The position numbers and the translations under genes are program-made. Source: Vicugna vicugna (Eukaryota). From it: a DNA stretch of 64,000 nucleotides. Positions 5,088 through 46,909 of this stretch are shown piece by piece; position 1 is the first letter of the stretch, and the number at the start of each line of letters is the position of its first letter. The stretch lies in assembly GCA_013265495.1 (NCBI GenBank), contig MU062317.1, forward strand, positions 1,610,229 to 1,674,228, in the 5' to 3' direction. The notes below the pieces were generated by a model that worked only from the letters and a program-made list of their open reading frames with translations, ran no database searches and was not told the DNA's origin.

Positions 5088-6908
<1,821 letters not shown>

Positions 6909-7519
6909 GNNNNNNNNNNNNNNNNNNNNNNNNNNNNNNNNNNNNNNNNNNNNNNNNNNNNNNNNNNNNNNNNNNNNNNNNNNNNNNNNNNNNNNNNNNN
7001 NNNNNNNNNNNNNNNNNNNNNNNNNNNNNNNNNNNNNNNNNNNNNNNNNNNNNNNNNNNNNNNNNNNNNNNNNNNNNNNNNNNNNNNNNNNNNNNNNNNN
7101 NNNNNNNNNNNNNNNNNNNNNNNNNNNNNNNNNNNNNNNNNNNNNNNNNNNNNNNNNNNNNNNNNNNNNNNNNNNNNNNNNNNNNNNNNNNNNNNNNNNN
7201 NNNNNNNNNNNNNNNNNNNNNNNNNNNNNNNNNNNNNNNNNNNNNNNNNNNNNNNNNNNNNNNNNNNNNNNNNNNNNNNNNNNNNNNNNNNNNNNNNNNN
7301 NNNNNNNNNNNNNNNNNNNNNNNNNNNNNNNNNNNNNNNNNNNNNNNNNNNNNNNNNNNNNNNNNNNNNNNNNNNNNNNNNNNNNNNNNNNNNNNNNNNN
7401 NNNNNNNNNNNNNNNNNNNNNNNNNNNNNNNNNNNNNNNNNNNNNNNNNNNNNNNNNNNNNNNNNNNNGCGCGCGGCTTCCGGGGCGGCGGAGCGCCTGT
7501 GGCGGCGGCCTCAGACCCC

Positions 7520-17089: not shown

Positions 17090-17960
17090 CCAGGGTGGAG
17101 GGGTAGCCGCCAGGCCCGCCGCGAGCTTCTCCCCCGAGATGCCCCTTCCCCATTCCTCTGGGCCCGGGCTGCGAAGCCGTCCGCCGTCGAAGCTGCTCTT
17201 GGCCTGGGCTCCGGGCTTGCACTTCCTCAGCTGCAGAAGAAAAAGGGGAGGAAAAGTGGCCCGGAGCAGCGGCTGCTCCCGCCCCGCCCAAAGGACGGAC
17301 TCCCAGACGCTCCTGCCGGGAGCCTGTCGCTCGCCACGCCCTGCTTGGGGACAAAGCTCCCAGCAGCAGGGACGCTGGGGACCAGGGGCCAGCGGGTGGC
17401 GGCAGAGCCGGAAACTCCTCGGCCCCTCCTGCTGGACTCCCAGCCCCGGGCCTCTGTCCGCCTAGAGAAACGATGTTTTCCTTTCNNNNNNNNNNNNNNN
17501 NNNNNNNNNNNNNNNNNNNNNNNNNNNNNNNNNNNNNNNNNNNNNNNNNNNNNNNNNNNNNNNNNNNNNNNNNNNNNNNNNNNNNNNNNNNNNNNNNNNN
17601 NNNNNNNNNNNNNNNNNCCTGCCGCCCAGGCCTCCAGCCGCCGCTACGCTGCCGGGCCAGGGGCTATGCGGCGGCCCTGGGTGCCTTCCCAGGCTCCGCA
17701 GGCCCCAGTCAAGCCCCGGGGCCTGTAGGCCATGGCCCGCCGTCCCTGCCCCCCACTGCCGTCAGTCAAGGCCTTCAGCGGGCAGCGTCTGGCCTTCCTC
17801 GGGCCCCTCCGGGTGACTGTGCTGCGGCCCCAAGGCAGAGGCCCCAGGCCCAGGAGCAGTCCGGTCCCTCCTGCTCCGGGATTCCTGCCAGGCTGGCCGT
17901 CCTGTGGGAGCTGCCGGGCCCCAGTGGCCGGGGAGGCAGGGCAGGCTGGCGCCGGGCCTT
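17090..17960. promoter_or_regulatory. Intergenic CpG-rich island between SKI and FAAP20 (contains N gap 17486-17617)
   Basis: Local CpG enrichment (ccgccgcgag, ccgtccgccgtcg, gccgccgctacgctgccggg) and coverage dropout like that in the other CpG islands. Confidence 0.55.
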
Positions 17961-30130: not shown

Positions 30131-30266
30131 GCCCCCGAGCGCCGCCCCTGGATCCCACCCGGACGGCGGCGAGTGTGCGCGGCTGTGGGATGAGCTGTTC
30201 CGCGTGGCGAGCGCAGATCTGAACGTGCACGGCGAGCTGCCGCCGCTCCCCGCGTTCCCCCGCCAG
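30131..30266 (+). CDS. FAAP20: FAAP20 coding exon 2 (136 nt, ...RLWDELFRVASADLNVHGELPPLPAFPRQ; FANCA-binding region)
   Basis: Acceptor tcccag|G and donor CAG|GTGTGC. The conserved RLW.EL and LPAFP motifs are in frame with exon 1; cumulative CDS 198 nt. Confidence 0.88.
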
Positions 30267-30353
30267 GTGTGCGGTGACCCAGCGCGCGGCCTCGGGTCTC
30301 GGGTTGGGGAGGGGCGGGCGCGGCCGGCGCGATCCGACGACTCGGTCTTGCAG

Positions 30354-30601
30354 GAGCCCATGCGCAGCCCCGAGCAGGCGCCACCGGAGAGCTTCACGGT
30401 GGGAACCAAGACCTTCTCCTGGACACCCTTCCCGCCCGTCCCCGAGCGAGGCAGGGGCCGGGTCCGCTCCTGCCCGGTGTCCCCCCAACACCACCCCGCG
30501 CGTGAGCCCCGCGGGACCTCCAGCGCCGAGGAGCAGCCGTCCTTGGAGGGGACGCCGACCCTGCGGAGCTGCCCCATGTGCCAAGCCGACTTCTCTCCCG
30601 G
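30354..30601 (+). CDS. FAAP20: FAAP20 coding exon 3 (248 nt, EPMRSPEQAPPESFTVGTKTFSWTPFPP...LRSCPMCQADFSP)
   Basis: Acceptor cttgcag|GAG and donor GG|GTGAGT. Contains the FTVG.KTFSWTPFPP motif and the CPMC half of the UBZ. Confidence 0.93.
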
Positions 30602-33600
30602 GTGAGTGGGCCTTCCCTCCCCTCTGCCTTTACCTGGTGGCCCTTGCCATTTGGAAACCACAGCCAGGTTTAGAAGGCTAGGGAGCTTGAGCTCGACTTT
30701 GGCATTTTAATGTAACATTTTGTGCTTAGAACGTTGGCAAAGGGCAGTGACTGCGTGAGGATCAGCCAGAGGACGCAGTGCTACGGATCTGGGGGTCGAC
30801 CTGCTGGCTGACAGGTCTGGGGTCTCCTGACCTCCACCCCTCAGACTCTACAGCAGGAGGGTAGGGAGGCTCTACCTGGGTCCACCCTGACATCCGGGAA
30901 CCTGGTGGTGACTGACTTCCCGGGGCTGAGACCACCTCCAGGTTCAGGTGGGCTGTAGGTCACTGAGCACCTTCCCAGAGGTAGATTGCTGGTTTTAAAA
31001 GTGAAAATCGTCTTTGTCTAGAGATGTTTTTTTTCTTTCAAAAAATCAAATGTATACATTATACCCTTTCTAAGTAAGGATGATGGAATTCGATTTTGAT
31101 GAGAAGTCCCAGCTGCTCAGCTTTGGGCCACAAGTCACACAGCCGAGGACATAGGTGTGGGGGGATCATGGGGGTCAGGGTGGAAGAAGCTTGGTCGGGC
31201 AAAGGGAATGGACAGCAGGTTTCGGTAGTCAGACCCGTTCTGCACTGGACATCCAGTGGCCTGGAGACGTGTGTTGTTACGAGCGCTGCCCCTCGTCTTC
31301 CAGAAACAAAACAGCCCCGGAGGGTGAAGGGAGTGGCTTCTAGAGCTAGAAGCTGTCCAACCAGTTATCAAAACATGTGGCAGAAAACCGCGGCACAGGA
31401 GAGAAGAAACCCTGACTTAAGTCAAACATCCAGGCTCCTCCAGGCAGTGAGGTTTATTTCATTGGAACCTGACGTGGGGTGGGCACTGCCTCTCCACACC
31501 GCTCCCAGATGGCTCACGGGGGGGGTGGGGAGCGGAGAGGGCGAGGTGGTGGCTGTCCTCAGGGCGCCTGTGCCCGGGCGAAGCCCCCAGCCGGCACAGG
31601 TCGGGCTGGGCGGGACAGGAGGTGCTGCAGCCGCGCTGAGGTGCCTGGTGCTCTGAGTAGCCCTGGAGAATCTGCAAGCCATCGCCAGACTCAGCGTCTC
31701 GCCCAGCACCCTCCTGCCTGCACTGATGCCTCAGCATGGCTGTGGCTGCAGGTGCCGACTCCCCTGCCCTTCCTGAGGGCTCGGTGAGCACTTCTTAAAA
31801 CGCAAAGTCCCCTTGGATCACACCTGTCAAAAGACATCAAGGAGCAGAAACACCTTTGGAAGCCCTGGAGGGAGGGCAGCTTTCCTGGCAGAGCCCTTGG
31901 GTCCCTGATTCTGTCGGGGCACCCTGGCCCCTCCTCCCGTTCCAGGGGAGCCTTTTGTCCTTGGATCGCTTACTTTCCTACCAAGAAAGGATTCCCAGAG
32001 ACACCAGAGGGAAGTCGGAAAGTTCCGGTTCTGAGCTGTTTCAGCAGTTAGATTGAGGCTTGGCAGAGTGCCTTGGCTTTTCAGAGTAGGGGGAAGTGCC
32101 GTTGGGGCTGGGTCTCTGCATGCCTGGAATGCTTCCAGCGTGGCCCTCCTGTGATTAAAAAGGAGAGGCCACACCCCCTCAAGGCTGCAGGATAACCTGG
32201 AGACAACAGAAGTCCCCATGCCGGATGCAGGGGCTCACACCCCTCAGGACCCTAGGGCAGGGAGTCTGGGCCCTGGGAGGGTCCAGGTTAGGGCTGGACA
32301 TAGACATGCGACTGTTGTGTTGTCTCGTGATTGTCTCTAGAAAAACACTTGCTTTCAGTGATGCTCGGGAATTATTTGACCAGAGACAGATGCCATCAGA
32401 GCAGCGGGAGCGGTGGTGCTGGTCAGCAGGAGGCGCCAGCAGCCTGGACGCCTCTGGCAGAGCAGTGGGATGAGCTCTCTTCTTTCTAGAAGTCTTGGTG
32501 TCTGCGGGTCACTCAGAACCACTTGTCCTCCAATGTGAGGGCAGCCACAAAGTGGACTCGATGGCCCCGTGTGAATGCCGTCCCCTCGCTGCACGCTCAG
32601 ATACTCTGTTTTCTGCTACCCGGGAGTCACAGAGGCGGTTGGGAGATTAGCTCCTCCAGGCCAAGTGATGTGAAGACGTGGAAACCCAAGTGTGAGCCGT
32701 GTCCCCGTGTCTATGTCGATGCCCAGGCGGGGGTCTCTCCAGCTCCGAGGCCCCTTAAGCCCCTGGGTACCTGTTCATGTTCAGAAGGTTCAGGAGGATC
32801 GCGGGCTGAGCCCCGTCTCCCGCAGCCGTGCCGGCCTCCACACCTGGGTGCGCGCGCGGGTGGGAGGCAAGGCTGCGGTGATGCCAGCTGAGGCGGAAGC
32901 ACAGTGCGTGAGAGACCCAGCGACAGCTCTTTTGGGTGGGGGTCTGAAGGAATCCCGGAGGGTGCCTCCCACCCGTGGGACACTGTCTGGAGATCCCTGG
33001 ACAAGGTGACCTGGTCCGGGTCTTAGGGTGTCTGGCAGCCTCGGAGGAAGCACATGCAGGGGCAGGCTCCAGGATGGGCCGAGGGGCCCCCGGGGCCTCA
33101 GGGCGGCACGGGCCGGCATCCGTGAGTGCTGCAGGGGCAGCGGAAGGCACCCACGCCAGTGCGGCTCCGGCTCCGGCGAGCAGCAGTGCGGGGGGTTAGG
33201 TTGGGTGAACGGCCGGCGCCTTAGTCCTGGGGTGGCTGTGGAAGGACGTCATTCCTGACTTGGTGCCTGGACGCAGTGGCTCCAGGGAAGCGGCTCTCCA
33301 TCCTGGCTGCTGAACTCTGGCTGGTTGACTAGGACAGCCCTGGAGGCGGCGGAGGACAGACCACGGCGGGAGGTCTCTGCAGGTGGAGAGAGGGGCACAG
33401 GCTGGCCGGCCAGCCGCCTCTGCGGAGGGCCCTGCAGCCTCGGAGGATCCTGGCAGAACACGGAGTGGATGTGATGACCACGTGTGAATGCCACGTGTGG
33501 ATCCCGGTGTTTGGCCAGGACTCTGGCTAGGCCCCTAGGCAGCCTCTCAGCCCGGCTGCTGGAAGAGCCTCGTTGGGAGAGTGGTTGGCGTGAGACTTGG

Positions 33601-34874: not shown

Positions 34875-34947
34875 GCTGGCCCCGTCGGACATCGACAGCC
34901 ATCTGGCTCAGTGCCTGGCGGAGAGCACGGACGACGTGGTGTGGTGA
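34875..34947 (+). CDS. FAAP20: FAAP20 coding exon 4 (73 nt, LAPSDIDSHLAQCLAESTDDVVW*; second half of the UBZ zinc finger)
   Basis: Acceptor ccttgcag|G. The DSHLAQCLAES motif and terminal Trp are present, with TGA at 34945-34947. Total CDS 519 nt = 172 aa. Confidence 0.95.
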
Positions 34948-35021
34948 GCCCTTCCCGGCCCCGCGGCTTCTCCTCCACCTGCGAGACCACGTCCTCTGCT
35001 TCCCGTGCTAAGAAGCTACAC

Positions 35022-38012: not shown

Positions 38013-38235
38013 CTGCAAGGGCCGGAGAGAGCAGGGTGGGCGCCACGTGAGACCCCGCCCCCGCCGCCCAGGGTGCCCCGCCCCCCCCCCCCGCCCCCCC
38101 GGGGCCCCCCGCCGCCCCCCCCCCCCNNNNNNNNNNNNNNNNNNNNNNNNNNNNNNNNNNNNNNNNNNCCCGCCCCGCCCCCACGCCCACGCGAGGCTCC
38201 CCGCAGCCCCGCACGCCCCACTCCAGCAGCCTTAC

Positions 38236-38351: not shown

Positions 38352-41063
38352 CTGGGGAGAACAACACGGTGGTCAGACTAGTGCGTGCTCCGGCTCTAGC
38401 GCCGGACTTAGATTCTGCACATACTCAACCAGAGTCGAACAGGAAGAGACGGCGTTTAAATACCCTCATGTTTGAATGCCGATTGCTTTTTTCTAGGAGA
38501 AATTTTTTCCGAAGGCAGAAAAGTCCTGAAGAGTGCCGGCAGTGCAAGCCCGTGGGCCTGGTACCTGGGATGCAGCACCAAGGCCAACCGCCTGCGCAGG
38601 AAACCGGCCCCCACCGCAGGTCTGCACCCCCAGCAGCCGGCCACTTACACCAAACGAAGCTGGTTTGGGGAGTTTTACCCTTTGTTAATCTTGGAACCCT
38701 GATCATAAAGGAGCTGGGACTGGGCAGGTGGACCCCCACCCACGCCGGCGCTGGATGCGTCCCTGTCCTGCTGGGACTCCTCCTCCCGAAGAGCAGCCAT
38801 TTCCGACTACATCTCTAATCCCAGAGGGATACACAGCAGTGAACTGCTGGTAAGGCAGGAAATGGGGCTTCTCAGGACCCAGACTCTGGCTTCCAACTCA
38901 CTGTTCACAAGGCTGAGACAGGCTCTGCCCAGGAAGGCAGACTTGGCAGCCCGGGTAAGACGCGATTCAGCGCCATGCCCCCCGGGCCAGCATATTCACA
39001 CAGTTAGGTTCCCTCTCCCTCTCACCGGGTGTGCTGTGCACCTGTGCTGGGCCAGGTGTGCTCCTGAGAACCGAGACTGAGCCATGGCTGAGAGGCACGG
39101 TCCCTGCCCCATGGGGCCCTCATGCCGAGTCTGTTCCTGCCCACAGTAGCCCCGTGAGGCTGGGAGCAGAGGGAATGCAGGAGCCAGCCCTCCCAGGCCG
39201 GACCTGGGCTCTCAGGACTCAGAGCAGCTTAGTTCACGAGACAGACGACCCAGGCCTTTCCCTTGGGAGGTCTGAGTGAGCACTGAGCCTGAAAACACCC
39301 GCCTTGTGGGGCCTCACGCCTTCCATGCCAGGCCCCGCCAGGTGGGAGAGCAGCAGCCAAGTGGAAACTATGAGGACCCCAGCCCACCTCCGCTCACACC
39401 ACGACTTTGCCACGTGGTGAAACTGTGGGGTCGGTGGTGGCGGGCGTAGGGAGGAAAAGCCACCACCCAGGCCTGGGCTGAGCCTGCCATCACCGGCGGG
39501 ACCTCTGAGGGCAGAGGGACCCCAGCCCCATTTTGTCAGAATGCCTCTTCCCCTCCTCTGTCCCCACATCCCCTCTCATCTGCCCGGGAAGCAACCATGT
39601 TCCCCGGCATGACTTCAGTGTAAACACTGTTCGTAAGGAATAAGCCGTCGGTCCGTACACAGCCCATCGACCACTGCCTTCTGTTCACAGGGAGACGTTT
39701 AGTGATGAGATGGGGGCAAGGCCAGCACCAGGCCACACCTGCTAACAGGCAGGGCCAGAAGTGACCAGGTGCCAGCTCAGGAGACGTGGCACCACACCCG
39801 CTGTGGCTCTCTCCGAGGCCCAAGGTCTGGCCGGAGCTGCAGCCGCGGGTGAGGCTCCCGTGCAGGTCCTTTGCAGCTTGGCGGGGTGAACGCCTGCGGA
39901 GCAGCACTGGGGCTGCACTTTGCAGAAGGCCCACCTACCAGGGCCGTGGGCTCTGCCGCAGACTCCACTGGTCAAGAGCTGGGCTGCGGGGGTGGCCTGT
40001 ATGGGGCCTGTGTGGGCCCAGCCAGCAGACAGCCCGGCGTCAGCACCCTCCCCCAGGCCAGGTGTGCCGAGCTGTACCCATAACGATTAGAAACCAACCA
40101 GAACCCGGATTTCTTCTACTTTGTGCTAGCAGAACAATAAAATTACAAGAAAAAAAATCCAAAGCTGGTGTTTTTCAAAGTGGCAATGCTCTGAATATCA
40201 TTTCTGAGTATTTGCATCTAATAACTCCAAGCAAGAAGACGTCTGGTTCTGTTCTGAAACAACCCAGCTGGGCCCTGGATGGGCGTGTGGGTGGGGGCAG
40301 GTGCATGTTCTGACCCCTTGCCTCACCCCCAACTGGGGTCCTAGAACTGAGGGGCCTCGGTGCCTTGGTGCCTGGCTGCCTCCCCCCGCTTCCAGGGCCC
40401 CACAGAAGCACACCCGAAAGTCCCACGGCTGCAAAGGGACAGTGGCGGGAGGGAGTGGACAGGAGCTGCTGTGCCCATGGGGCTGCAGAAGGAAGGGCTG
40501 GGGGAGGGAGCACCCCAGGGCCCAGAGCTTCTGAACTAGTTCCAGCTGAAGTCCAGCGTTTCCTTCATTAGCTATCTGGTCTTTTTTTCCCTCAAAAAAC
40601 GTATTTTAAGGGTTAAAGATCAGTAACTCTGCAACTGTTTCTATGTTTGGAAACAAATTAGGTTCTGTTTTCGTTTAACACCAGAAGCCTTAGCACTAAG
40701 GTCTTAGGGACTCCAGCTCTGAGCTCTCCGGCCGTGACCTGAGCAGGTTCTGGGATACAGAAAGGCGGGTGCTGGGAAACTAACCATGAAACCAAAGCAC
40801 ACGCCCTTGTCTGGGCACTGACTCTGCACAGAACCAGCTGGGATCAAGCACGACCCCCAGGCCCCCGGAGCCGGTGTGGATGTCCAGGCAGGGCTTCCCC
40901 CAGGATCTTCTGGAAGTGCCAGCTCAGGGGCTTGTCACAGCCCCCCACCCTCCCTGTTCTCCATCCAGTATGAGTTCCCCCATCGCTCCCACACCCTCAT
41001 ATCTGTCTGTCCATCCTGCCCCAGGCCCGCCCACCCCGGGGAGCAGATCCTGGGGTGCTTTAC

Positions 41064-41153
41064 CAGGTCCCAGTCTATGCTGCGGAAGAAGGCGTGAGAC
41101 TTGATGTCAGAAAATCCAGTCTGTGGCCGGCAGCCGAGCCTCTCCTTCGGGTC
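41064..41153 (-). CDS. PRKCZ: PRKCZ exon 16 (90 nt, DPKERLGCRPQTGFSDIKSHAFFRSIDWDL)
   Basis: Acceptor ccccag|GAC and donor CTG|GTAAAG. Confidence 0.97.
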
Positions 41154-41285
41154 CTGGGGGTCAGAGTTCAAACAATGACAAGTCAGCACAGAGCAAAGCA
41201 GCCCCCGCTTCACAGCTGGTGCCGGACAGGGAACTGGCCTGCCCTCCCGGTCACTTAAAGGCCTTAAACCATCACTCATCATAGA

Positions 41286-41366
41286 AATGCAGATCTCCGC
41301 AGCGCAGAACCTGGGGAGAGGGTGGCACCCATCCTGAGCGGAGAGAGCCCGACAAGGGACCTGGAC
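41286..41366 (-). repeat. Diverged 81-bp duplicate of the PRKCZ intron11/exon12 junction (source 43894-43974)
   Basis: 73/81 identical by hand alignment, ungapped, offset 2608 bp. It retains the AG acceptor at 41312-41311. Confidence 0.9.
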
Positions 41367-41581
41367 AGATGCTGAGCTGCTTTGCTAAATTCCTCTCTGG
41401 AGTAATTTCTCGTCATCATGTTTTGTCTGGGGTGAGTAAACATTCAAACCCACCCCCAAGATGTCCAGGAGCTGATACCGGAGATGACCAGGGGGTGGAG
41501 CCTGGGCCCGATGCACTGTGAGAAAGGGCTCCAGGCCGGCAGCCCCGGACGGCACGGCTGCCATGGTGGCTGAGAACGTAC

Positions 41582-41661
41582 CTTGTTTAGAAATCCTTTC
41601 AAGACGTGGGATGCCTTGACCGAGAGGAAGCGGGGAATCCGGATGGGCTTCTCCAGGATGA
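41582..41661 (-). CDS. PRKCZ: PRKCZ exon 15 (80 nt, VILEKPIRIPRFLSVKASHVLKGFLNK)
   Basis: Acceptor ttgcag|TC and donor AAG|GTACGT. Confidence 0.97.
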
Positions 41662-42370
41662 CTGCAATGATTGCGGGCGGCGGTGGGAGCCCGTTTCTCC
41701 TCTGTGTGCCCCGCCCCCTCCCCACTGGTCCCTCTGCCCAGCAGCCAAGGGGCTGGCCACCTGCAGGGCTCTTGGAATCCCCCCACCAGGCAGGAGGGTT
41801 AAGCATTCCTGGTGCCCTGAAGCCCCCTTCCTTCACCCCGCAGGGTCTGCAGCCCTCAGAGGGCCCCCATGCACACGGTCACATGTGCCCATGCTCACGT
41901 TTGAACCAAGAGAGGCTCTGCTCGCCCTGCACCCCTGTGTCCGTGGGCACCAGAGGCACTGTGGGGACAGCTGGGGTTCTGGGGCTCAGTCTCCCAGGGT
42001 GGTCAATTCTGGCTCAGGGGCCTAGATGGCAAGAAGCCGCAATGGTGGCTGGAAGGGGGCGGTGCCCTGGCTAAGCACAGCCCCCTGCCCAGGACTCTGG
42101 GGTGCACACCCGGTGCGGGTCGGCAGGGAGCTGGGCTACATCAGGACGAATTCTCTCTCCTGCTCGTGTGAAAAAGCAGTGCCCCCGCCCCATATTGTTT
42201 CCACCCCCACAACCCGGTCATGAGAACAGACAGCCCCCGCCAGTCTGTGGTAGCCGCGGGGACCAGCCTGGGGGCGCTTTCTCCTGCTCCTCTGCAGGGG
42301 GAGAACCCACAGGGCGCGGGAAGAACTGGACACACAGACCAAGGGCGGCAGCCCTGAGCGGCCCACGCAC

Positions 42371-42490
42371 CTTGGAAAAGGTAGTCCTCGGTGTTCATGT
42401 CGGGGTTGTCGGTGATGATGTCGAAGGGGGAGCGGCCGGCCATCATCTCGAACATCAGGACACCCAGGGCCCACCAGTCCACACTGAACC
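42371..42490 (-). CDS. PRKCZ: PRKCZ exon 14 (120 nt, [40 protein letters not shown])
   Basis: Kinase subdomain IX DWWALG. Acceptor ctccag|GG and donor AAG|GTGCGT. Confidence 0.97.
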
Positions 42491-42735
42491 CTGGAGGGGA
42501 GCGCAGGCCATCACGCCGGGCGCGGGCCATGTGCAGCGGCCGCAGGATGGGCGTCTCCTGTTGTCCTGCCGGTCACCGGGCGGCAGGAGCCACGGTTTCC
42601 GTTTCTTGGACCAGAGCTGAGGGTGGGTGTCCCCCAGGCAGCCTGGCCCCGCCGTGTCTACTGTCCTGAGGACGCCTGTCTCTTAGCTAGCAGCCGGGCT
42701 GTGTCACGGCAAAGCCCCCGGGTAGACCAGCTGCC

Positions 42736-42858
42736 CCAAGAGTGCCCGGCCCTGTCCTCCTCCATCACACACGGGACCCCTGCCCCGGCAGGTTCTACCA
42801 AGAGTGCCCGGCCCTGTCCTCCTCCATCACACACGGGACCCCGCCCCGGCAGGTTCTA
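42736..42858. repeat. Two-copy 62/61-bp tandem duplication in PRKCZ intron 13
   Basis: ccaagagtgcccggccctgtcctcctccatcacacacgggacccc(t)gccccggcaggttcta at 42736-42797 and 42798-42858, differing by one indel. Confidence 0.92.
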
Positions 42859-42968
42859 GACTCTGCTCTGGTCCACGGGGATAATGGCAAAGAAAATGTC
42901 TGGAAATATCTGATGGCATATTTGTGACACGCATCAACTGAAAACAAGAGAACCCAAAACTGCGTGGG

Positions 42969-43016
42969 GTGTGCACACGTGCATACGTGTGCGCACACAC
43001 GTGCATACACGCACGT
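42969..43016. repeat. 48-nt perfectly alternating purine-pyrimidine tract (Z-DNA candidate)
   Basis: gtgtgcacacgtgcatacgtgtgcgcacacacgtgcatacacgcacgt read directly. Confidence 0.85.
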
Positions 43017-43346
43017 TCTAATCTCACTCTCATTTCCCTCCTGGAGAAAGAAGGGCAGACGTGCTCCAGGGTCGGCGGGGCTGCAGGTGGTGCTGGCTGA
43101 CCCACCTCTGTGGACAGTCACCGCCTGGCTCCTCCCACAGCCACCGGGCACCGACCCTGGGTTCTGTCTTTGCTTCGTCCTCTCCTTCCCAAGCCCCTAG
43201 GGCTCTGTGATGAGAAGGATCCTGTCCAGTGACCTCCCCGGGGGACACTGAGGTGGACACACAGGACAACAGATGGGGACTGAGGCCAGATGGTGACATG
43301 GGGCTGGGAATGGAGTAAGGGCGTGTGTTTTAGTGTCACTTGGTCA

Positions 43347-44845
<1,499 letters not shown>

Positions 44846-45409
44846 GAGCATGAGTGTGTGGGGGCTACTCTTGATTTATTACTGGCCCCTGGAAAGATCT
44901 CTGGTGACTCACAACACTGCATGGAAGTATCTTCGAGTGAGGAAATGAGGAAAAGAGAAAAGTATGGAAAACAGGAAAGAGCGAGCCATGGAGTGGAAGT
45001 GAACGCCCCGCCCGCCTACGAGGCCCGAGGCTGCAGAGGGGTGAGGACGGGTCAGCTTCCTGAGAGCTCAAACGGTGGTCCTCATCCTCCCGCGACCAAG
45101 CAAACCCTGGCTGAGTGTCCCGGCGGGGCGGGGCGGGGCGGGGCGCGGCAGGACAGCCCCCTATGTCCACGCACGTCAGTTTATAGTCGGAACTTCTCCC
45201 CATTTCGGAAACAGGGAAAAAGCCAACACGGGACAGCGCCTTCCTGCACGCACACCCCCGTCTCTCTCGAGGGGGTCCGAGACCTTCCGGGCTCTGGTGG
45301 GTCACCTGGCAGGAGACGGCCGCGCCGCTCCCCACCCCCAGCCACCTCCCCAGACCCATCTCCCTTCCGACTCACCGCTGGGGCCCAGGGAAGGCCCGCC
45401 CCCACGCAC

Positions 45410-45496
45410 CTGGCGTGCTCCTCCGGAAGCTTCCTCTGCCTCTGCATGTGGAACATGAGGTCACCCCCGTTCACGTACTCGATGACCAAAAACAAC
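45410..45496 (-). CDS. PRKCZ: PRKCZ exon 11 (87 nt, [29 protein letters not shown])
   Basis: Hinge EYVNGGDL. Acceptor ccaccag|G and donor CAG|GTGCGT, phase 2 at both ends. Confidence 0.97.
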
Positions 45497-46909
45497 CTGG
45501 TGGCAGAGAGGGCCGAGGGGGCGGGGATTGCACGCGGCCACTCCAGGGAGAACCATGGGCCTGTCCTCTCTCGCGGGCGGTCACTCCTCCCAGAGGCCAG
45601 AAAGGCAGGGACCCAAGGCCGCCCACCCTGCCCCGAGGTCGGAGGGTATGGCTTAGCTCTGACCCCGACAGGGTCAAATTCAGAAGAGAAACTTTCACTT
45701 GGGCGTTCATTTCATCCAGCACAGTAATTTGCTCTCCCAATGGTGCAAGGCCTACCTTTGGGTAAAAAAAGGTACAAATAAGGCAGAGCTAGTGGCTGGA
45801 GGCCCCGTGGGGGTGGGGAGGGCGCTGTGTGGCCAGGGGGCTGCAGAAGCTCCCTAGGGAGCAGAGGCCTGAATGGTGGTGGGGGTGGGGGCTGCGAGAC
45901 CACCTGGAGGCCCAGGGGACCGGTCATCAGAAGCCGGAAGGGCAGGCCCACGAGCCAGGTGAGGGGGATGACAACGTCTGGCAGTCGGATGACCACTCTG
46001 GCCGCTGTCTGTGTGGACCCCAGGGAGGGGAGGCAGTGCCCAGGTGAGAACACAGGTGGGGCGGCCGGGCGTCCAGGAGAAGAAAGGAGTGGGTGGGACC
46101 CCAGGTGGGACCTGGTGGCTGGAACCCTTCCCGAGCAGGGAGGACAGGGCAGGTCAGGAGCACTGACCAGCCACAGGAGGTCTGCGATGCCAGGCACCCC
46201 TCCTGGAGGAGGCCGGAGGGGCAGCAGGGGTCAGGGTGGGGCTGGCGTGGGGTCGCTGACATCTCCTGGACGCACACAGGGCCCTTCAGGTCTCCAAACA
46301 GTTCACCACGTGGTTAATTTCCTGATAAGCTCCTTCTCCCATTTAATAAGGCTTCGTTTTCAAAATTAAATTCACACACAACTTTCCAGAAATACCCTGC
46401 TGAGGGCAGTTCGTGGATTTTAGGTCAACAGCTCCTCTGGGGCATCGTCAGCTCCATGGTGCCCCAGGCAGGGAGGGAGGTGGTGGGGGCACCCTGTAGG
46501 CTCCCTGGCCCCTCCAGCCCCTCCGGGTGCCAGGCCGTCTGCGTGGAGAGCCATCGGTGACACCCCGGACGGAGGGCAGAGGCCCCCTTTATACAGAGCA
46601 GGTGAACAAGCTGCAAACCACTCCCAAGTCCCACTGTGCATTTAGACCAGAAACAAGCTCCTAAACATGTGAACAGCAGAGATGGAGACAGAAGCCTGAG
46701 CGCTGGGGGACAGCCAGAGACTCCTGGCTTGGAGGAACCCAGCTCGGCTGAGGAGGGCGGCCCCTCTGCTTGGAGAGGCTGCAGGAGCCAACCCTTCCAT
46801 GGGCCCGCCTCTCTGTGAGTGAGTTTACTCTCATACGTCGTGCCTGCAGCTGCCTTCACGCAACAGCAGAGGTGAGAGATGGAACTTCACAGGCCTGGTG
46901 CAAACAGTG

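Follow-up and report, generated by a model that had tools for sequence, protein, structure and literature searches.

An apparently camelid-specific copy of the exon-12 splice acceptor in intron 15 of PRKCZ, probably a neutral relic

Background

Intronic pseudo-acceptors that were made by a small duplication are a known kind of element, and the sequence described here is one of them. Two other described systems are close to it. Templated insertions arise by template switching during microhomology-mediated repair or replication, and decoy exons promote the retention of introns. The PRKCZ gene itself gives rise to PKM-zeta, which is produced from an internal promoter and keeps an intact kinase domain. 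To our knowledge no PRKCZ isoform uses an acceptor in intron 15 or lacks exons 12-15. PRKC-zeta-PrC is reported as another alternative product of PRKCZ (PMC3394965).

The locus analysed here lies within a stretch of 64,000 nucleotides from Vicugna vicugna (assembly GCA_013265495.1, contig MU062317.1, positions 1,610,229 to 1,674,228), hereafter called the window, and all positions are counted from its first letter. An initial annotation of this DNA had described a duplicated exon-12 acceptor in intron 15 of PRKCZ, here called the decoy, and had proposed that its use could switch PKC-zeta/PKM-zeta to a kinase-dead form or direct the transcript to nonsense-mediated decay (NMD).

Results

The gene on the minus strand, tail-to-tail with FAAP20 on the plus strand, is PRKCZ. 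This assignment is based on the exon translations, which are of the zeta type of atypical PKC (aPKC), on the neighbouring FAAP20 and on the orthologous loci of camel, hippo, narwhal and dog, which have a PB1-C1-Pkinase-Pkinase_C gene of 591-629 residues in the same position. The translation of exon 12 has its best PDB matches in the kinase domains of PKC iota. The end of exon 11 lies at 45410, in phase 2. The limits first proposed for exons 12 and 16 had to be corrected slightly, to those in Table 1, and the frame arithmetic built on them still holds.

Table 1. Positions of the copy, its source and the surrounding features in the window
Feature	Position	Strand	Remarks
81-nt intronic copy (decoy)	41286..41366	-	56 nt of the intron-11 3' end and 25 nt of the exon-12 start, inside PRKCZ intron 15; 73/81 identical to the source
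Source acceptor, intron 11/exon 12	43894..43974	-	Orthologous acceptors of hippo, narwhal and dog align to the source
Copied AG of the decoy	41311..41312	-	Intact in all five camelid sequences; first 'exonic' base 41310
Decoy-specific T>G	41334 (41334..41335)	-	Common to llama-type and camel-type copies; the only transversion; CTCAT/ATGAC to CTCAG/AGGAT
Putative exon-16 extension	41154..41310	-	157 nt = 1 nt + 52 codons, open in the window
TGA on the route from exon 15 (phase 0) into the decoy	41272..41274	-	Codon 13; the exon-16 donor follows 208 nt downstream
Codon 18 of the proposed frame	41255..41257	-	Leu (TTA) in the window and in V. pacos; stop (TAA) in three Camelus species
PRKCZ exon 12	43918-43783	-	Codes for the alphaE helix of aPKC, the catalytic loop YRDLKLDN and DYG
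PRKCZ exon 15	41582..41661	-	Ends at 41582 in phase 0
PRKCZ intron 15	41154..41581	-	428 nt; authentic acceptor AG at 41155-41154; CTGAC branch motif with its A at 41183
PRKCZ exon 16	41064..41153	-	Starts at 41153
FAAP20	Exon ORF 30204-30605; UBZ-encoding last coding exon ~34894-34960	+	Recognised from motifs and from homologous FAAP20 proteins in camels and other mammals

The longest PRKCZ product on record has 591 amino acids in the annotations of V. pacos, C. bactrianus and C. ferus, where only the longest product per gene was kept. The GenBank annotation of C. dromedarius (GCA_000803125.3) has a PRKCZ product of 396 residues with two separate Pkinase matches (dromedary locus L003, 18097-25111), which may be a mis-modelled or a differently spliced gene model. 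A 3' intron of PRKCZ is about 2.8 kb longer in the dromedary (window ~39410-39420 against L003 19499-22306). The additional sequence is absent from the window and from V. pacos and, judged by the geometry of the locus, is found in the other two camels too. Either the camels gained this sequence by insertion or the llama/alpaca lineage lost it by deletion. The intron between exons 13 and 14 contains a tandem pair of 50-nt repeats (42736-42785 and 42798-42847) with a period of 62 nt and 96% identity, and the pair is also found in the V. pacos assembly. Intron 11 contains an ORF-like stretch on the minus strand (44479-44922) with the look of a dispersed mammalian repeat, the translation of which includes ...VLCNHPH...LQNFLIFPNSNSVP.... 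A run of N (38127-38168) lies within the last coding exon of PRKCZ, and other such runs are at 1212-1342, 5955-6158, 6251-6406, 6910-7468 and 17486-17617.

The copy aligns to its source without gaps and on the same strand. Its local alignment score is 65, compared with 10.6 +/- 1.5 for shuffled sequence, and a BLAST search of the 81 nt within the window finds the source at E 4.8e-22. The match of 73 in 81 positions, with 56 nt from intron 11 and 25 nt from exon 12, had been claimed in the initial annotation and is confirmed. The copy is situated 2,608 nt downstream of its template, four exons on and in a different intron. In the whole 2.03-Gb assembly the 81-mer has exactly two occurrences, and the remainder of intron 15, including the flanks of the copy, is single-copy in the genome. 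All 22 sampled words of 41155-41400 are present in DNA sequencing runs from two studies.

The copy is real DNA, because the DNA runs of two studies contain the stretch and because other camelid assemblies carry it. The initial annotation had argued for an old and real duplication and against an error of assembly, and the assemblies of V. pacos and of three Camelus species together with the DNA runs bear this out. An assembly or collapse artefact has nothing in its favour except that it can be imagined a priori, and its probability is negligible: the copy occurs in five independent assemblies, every sampled word is found in the DNA runs, and the two copies have diverged by 10% with substitutions that are specific to lineages. 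This explanation was therefore rejected.

The 3' loci of PRKCZ in related species were reached through FAAP20, from the exon ORF to FAAP20 proteins and from these to their genes with flanks of 10 kb; the locus obtained from the black rhino covered the last two PRKCZ exons only. The V. pacos assembly is 99.5-99.6% identical to the window over 6.7 kb and 100% identical over intron 15, the copy included. In C. dromedarius, C. bactrianus and C. ferus, intron 15 is 428 nt long with no indels relative to the window and with 96.5% identity, and the copy is identical to that of the window at 79 of 81 positions in all three species. Intron 15 is 355 nt long in hippo, 384 nt in narwhal and 295 nt in dog, and in these three species neither their own exon-12 acceptor nor the camelid copy resembles it beyond the level of shuffled sequence. 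When the 81 nt are taken out of the camelid intron, the joined flanks AGCATCT^TCTATGA can be aligned to AGCGTTTCCAATGA of narwhal, an empty site that argues for an insertion in camelids and not for a loss elsewhere. The copy is thus, judged from these alignments, a camelid-specific insertion that is older than the split between camels and llamas. The comparison with other mammals that had been proposed in order to date the copy finds it in camelids only among the species compared, with hippo, narwhal and dog lacking it.

Eight positions differ between copy and source in the window. Two of them, 41331 and 41319, are specific to llama/alpaca, with the source base in Camelus, and the other six are common to both camelid lineages. 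At least four of these six are derived on the copy when the acceptors of hippo, narwhal and dog are used for comparison. The shared derived differences, set against a divergence of 3.5% between the lineages, suggest that the insertion precedes the camel/llama split by a comparable time or more, an estimate that is crude and based on few sites. The split is commonly dated to about 16-25 Myr.

Neither a poly(A) nor a target-site duplication accompanies the copy. An imperfect microhomology of 5-6 nt is seen at one junction only (recipient GCAT(C)T, end of the copy ...GCATT) and is weak. The copy contains intron sequence and no poly(A), and the site is cleanly empty in the outgroups, from which we infer that a template switch in repair or replication is its likely origin. 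The 32 nt directly 3' of the copy (41254-41285) were considered as a second templated piece and rejected, being unique in the genome at up to 3 mismatches and aligning partly to narwhal; they are probably diverged resident intron. Upstream of the copy, a block at 41385-41430 (GACAAAA...GAGAAAT...CCA.AGAGGA) is conserved in camelids, hippo and narwhal, unlike the surrounding intron, and has no match in Rfam.

Splice-site strength was assessed from identity to the constitutive acceptor and from simple counts of motifs. From -20 to +3 the decoy differs from the exon-12 acceptor by one base in the window and by none in Camelus, and the pyrimidine fraction is 0.72 in the decoy and in the exon-12 acceptor alike. 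The core of the acceptor, that is the AG and the last 20 bases of the intron, is intact, as had been claimed initially. Some use of the decoy would be plausible because the 23-mer around its AG is practically identical to that of the constitutive acceptor.

The T>G at 41334 removes the UGAC motif, weakens the other branch motif and creates a new AG 23 nt upstream of the decoy AG. The authentic exon-12 acceptor has a yUnAy motif at -20 to -25 in the window, in hippo and in narwhal, and is free of AG for at least 52 nt upstream. The AG-free zone of the decoy is about 23 nt long, with no U-n-A motif other than that which includes the A of the new AG. The AG-exclusion-zone rule (PMC1431707) was used to assess the branch points. 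The decoy shows no consensus yUnAy within its AG-free zone, where only yUnA-G remains, and under this rule its AG would be left without a good branch point. The A at -25 (CUCAG) might serve as branch point for the decoy. The authentic exon-16 acceptor, which lies 157 nt downstream of the decoy, has a consensus CTGAC branch motif at -30.

The frame that starts at 41309 is open for 52 codons until the authentic exon-16 acceptor, and the segment 41310-41064 measures 247 nt. Two routes into the decoy had been calculated in the initial annotation: from exon 11, which ends in phase 2 at 45410 and would continue through the open 247-nt segment, and from exon 15, which ends in phase 0 and would meet a TGA after 12 codons. 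Both calculations are correct. The window has T at 41257 where Camelus has A, giving the in-frame TAA of C. dromedarius, C. bactrianus and C. ferus. The outgroups have no alignable sequence there, and either base may be the ancestral one. Whichever way the codon changed, the frame is no conserved feature in this comparison of camelid sequences.

Between the window and Camelus the extension differs at 5 of 157 positions (3.2%), the copy at 2 of 81 (2.5%), the whole intron at 15 of 428 (3.5%) and the rest of the intron at 13 of 347. One of the five differences in the extension is nonsense, three are missense and one is synonymous, and four of the five thus alter the peptide. The extension evolves at the neutral rate of the intron, without sign of constraint. 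At 32% of the positions on this strand of the GC-rich window, 52 codons follow one another without a stop, and the chance expectation of such a frame in the matching phase is about 0.1 (0.32 x 1/3).

Searches for a corresponding protein gave no support for the decoy frame. A word-indexed protein search with the 77-aa decoy frame rendered no candidate, and a HMMER search with the decoy peptide among 1.84 billion cluster representatives rendered four matches, all of them to internally repetitive, unrelated proteins and due to chance. The ORF that reads through from exon 15 gave 46 matches, all into the local intron or exon 16, with none from a camelid and none joining exon 15 to the decoy. These negative results are weak, as the databases contain no camelid ORF calls for the PRKCZ locus and limits on length apply. 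JGI metagenome contigs, scanned for the exact pattern of the copy/flank junction, contained no match.

Nine RNA-labelled runs from three studies each contain 0.27 (6/22) of the sampled words of 41155-41400. In the Camelus assemblies 60 of the 216 31-mers of this stretch (0.278) are identical to the window, and the extension alone would give 0.148. Because the share of 0.27 equals the 0.278 that is possible for Camelus, the simplest reading, from word shares only, is that the nine runs are camel-type and contain 41155-41400 unspliced across the decoy AG. Pre-mRNA, a retained intron, antisense read-through from FAAP20 or carry-over of DNA could be the source of this unspliced signal. The word shares fit read-through of the decoy, and a minor use of it is compatible with them.

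RNA-labelled 'reproductive system metagenome' runs and related runs contain 0.18-0.23 of the words of 41000-45560 (4.5 kb); over 41148-42200 the most that a camel sequence could have in common with the window is about 0.29 of the words. Measured against this ceiling, most of the 4.5-kb locus, introns included, is seemingly present as camel-type sequence, and abundant pre-mRNA, FAAP20 antisense read-through or DNA carry-over could be the cause. A snoRNA near the copy was also considered because of ATGATGA motifs and the discrete word share in the RNA runs. It was rejected since Rfam had no hit above E 0.8, not even Camelus conserves the upstream motif, and the word share is explained by the divergence between camel and llama.

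Discussion

The decoy is probably a neutral, camelid-specific templated duplication of 81 bp that is either unused or used at the level of noise; we infer both the mechanism and the low usage. Early in the stem lineage of the camelids, DNA from the boundary of intron 11 and exon 12 would have been copied 2.6 kb downstream into intron 15, and the copy would then have drifted neutrally. The AG and the pyrimidine tract of the decoy are still as good as those of a constitutive acceptor. The branch-point motifs of the source have been lost through the T>G, and the decoy would have to compete with the strong authentic acceptor of exon 16; low use is what these two circumstances together predict. If the decoy is used at all, its natural partner would be exon 15, and the resulting transcript would be frameshifted and prone to NMD. 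The open frame toward exon 16 in the llama/alpaca lineage would be a product of chance and not a maintained coding route.

The other readings give the decoy a function. It is unlikely that the decoy is a regulated poison acceptor, to which exon 15 is joined in a controlled fraction of transcripts so that the added 157 nt shift the frame and NMD lowers the amount of camelid PKC-zeta/PKM-zeta. Such a role agrees with an AG and a pyrimidine tract that are intact in all five camelid sequences, with a position between the exon-15 donor and the authentic acceptor, and with a TGA that lies 208 nt before the exon-16 donor and so satisfies the 50-55 nt rule of NMD. However, the copy is no more constrained than neutral sequence (2/81 differences, compared with 13/347 in the remainder of the intron), the branch motifs of the source are lost and a new AG stands upstream, and the authentic acceptor is equipped with a consensus CTGAC branch point. 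A non-productive role, in which the copy binds U2AF/U2 without being spliced and thereby, as decoy exons do, favours the retention of intron 15, which is short and GC-rich, is rather improbable. The word shares of the nine RNA-labelled runs do fit an unspliced intron 15 across the decoy, but ordinary pre-mRNA, FAAP20 antisense read-through or carried-over DNA would give equal shares; such runs also seem to contain the greater part of the 4.5-kb locus, other introns included, and a conservation signal is lacking here too.

The isoform at the centre of the initial annotation would be restricted to llama/alpaca. Exon 11 would be spliced to the decoy, exons 12-15 skipped, and an in-frame protein without catalytic loop, DYG, activation loop and alphaF would act as a scaffold or a dominant negative. 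This is very improbable, even though the window and V. pacos have an open frame and the phases of exon 11 and the decoy match. TAA closes the frame in three Camelus species, four of the five lineage differences change the peptide, and a frame of this kind is expected by chance about once in ten cases. Four constitutive exons would have to be skipped, the peptide is absent from the 1.8 billion cluster representatives and from the word-indexed search, and a kinase core that lacks alphaE-alphaF and carries 52 unrelated residues instead would be unlikely to fold. The initial annotation had itself allowed that the open frame may be chance, which agrees with the expectation of one in ten and with the TAA in Camelus. 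It had also named as evidence against its proposal that relatives carry the copy with a mutated AG or a broken frame: the frame of the relatives is broken, by the TAA in Camelus, and their AG is intact. The proposed switch to a kinase-dead form or to NMD is not supported in view of this stop codon, the neutral rate and the peptide-changing differences. A broader version, in which with the llama/alpaca-only T at 41257 a 'dead' duplicated acceptor gives some tissue either a PKC-zeta without its kinase or a tunable NMD isoform, would be a long shot. If it were true, the llama/alpaca isoform would be a young regulatory novelty.

If the neutral reading is true, the locus has no bearing on the biology of PKC-zeta. 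It would then be a clean and dated natural example in which an AG and a pyrimidine tract have persisted intact for tens of millions of years, and in which a copy of a constitutive acceptor is tolerated, at no visible cost, in a short intron of an essential kinase gene. The shared T>G in the branch-point region would make it a handy natural substrate for studying how cells ignore acceptors that look strong.

Comparison with known systems

Like decoy exons, the copy is an intronic element that resembles a splice site and could engage splicing factors non-productively. Unlike them, it has no paired donor and no conservation. The resemblance to templated insertions lies in the short segment, the nearby template on the same strand, the clean empty site in outgroups and the lack of poly(A) and target-site duplication. 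The microhomology of the PRKCZ copy is weak, and the age of the event prevents a confident reading of its junctions; a template switch is the probable mechanism here.

With intronic pseudo-acceptors and cryptic 3' splice sites the decoy shares an AG with a good pyrimidine tract, placed in an intron upstream of the authentic acceptor, and its use could likewise add intronic sequence and a premature stop. In contrast to cryptic 3' splice sites that stem from a point mutation or a transposable element, it was copied from a constitutive acceptor of the same gene. This origin would explain why its core is as strong as that of a real site, with the branch-point region decayed. The copy is not in tandem and landed in a different intron, and its match in phase with exon 16 would therefore be accidental.
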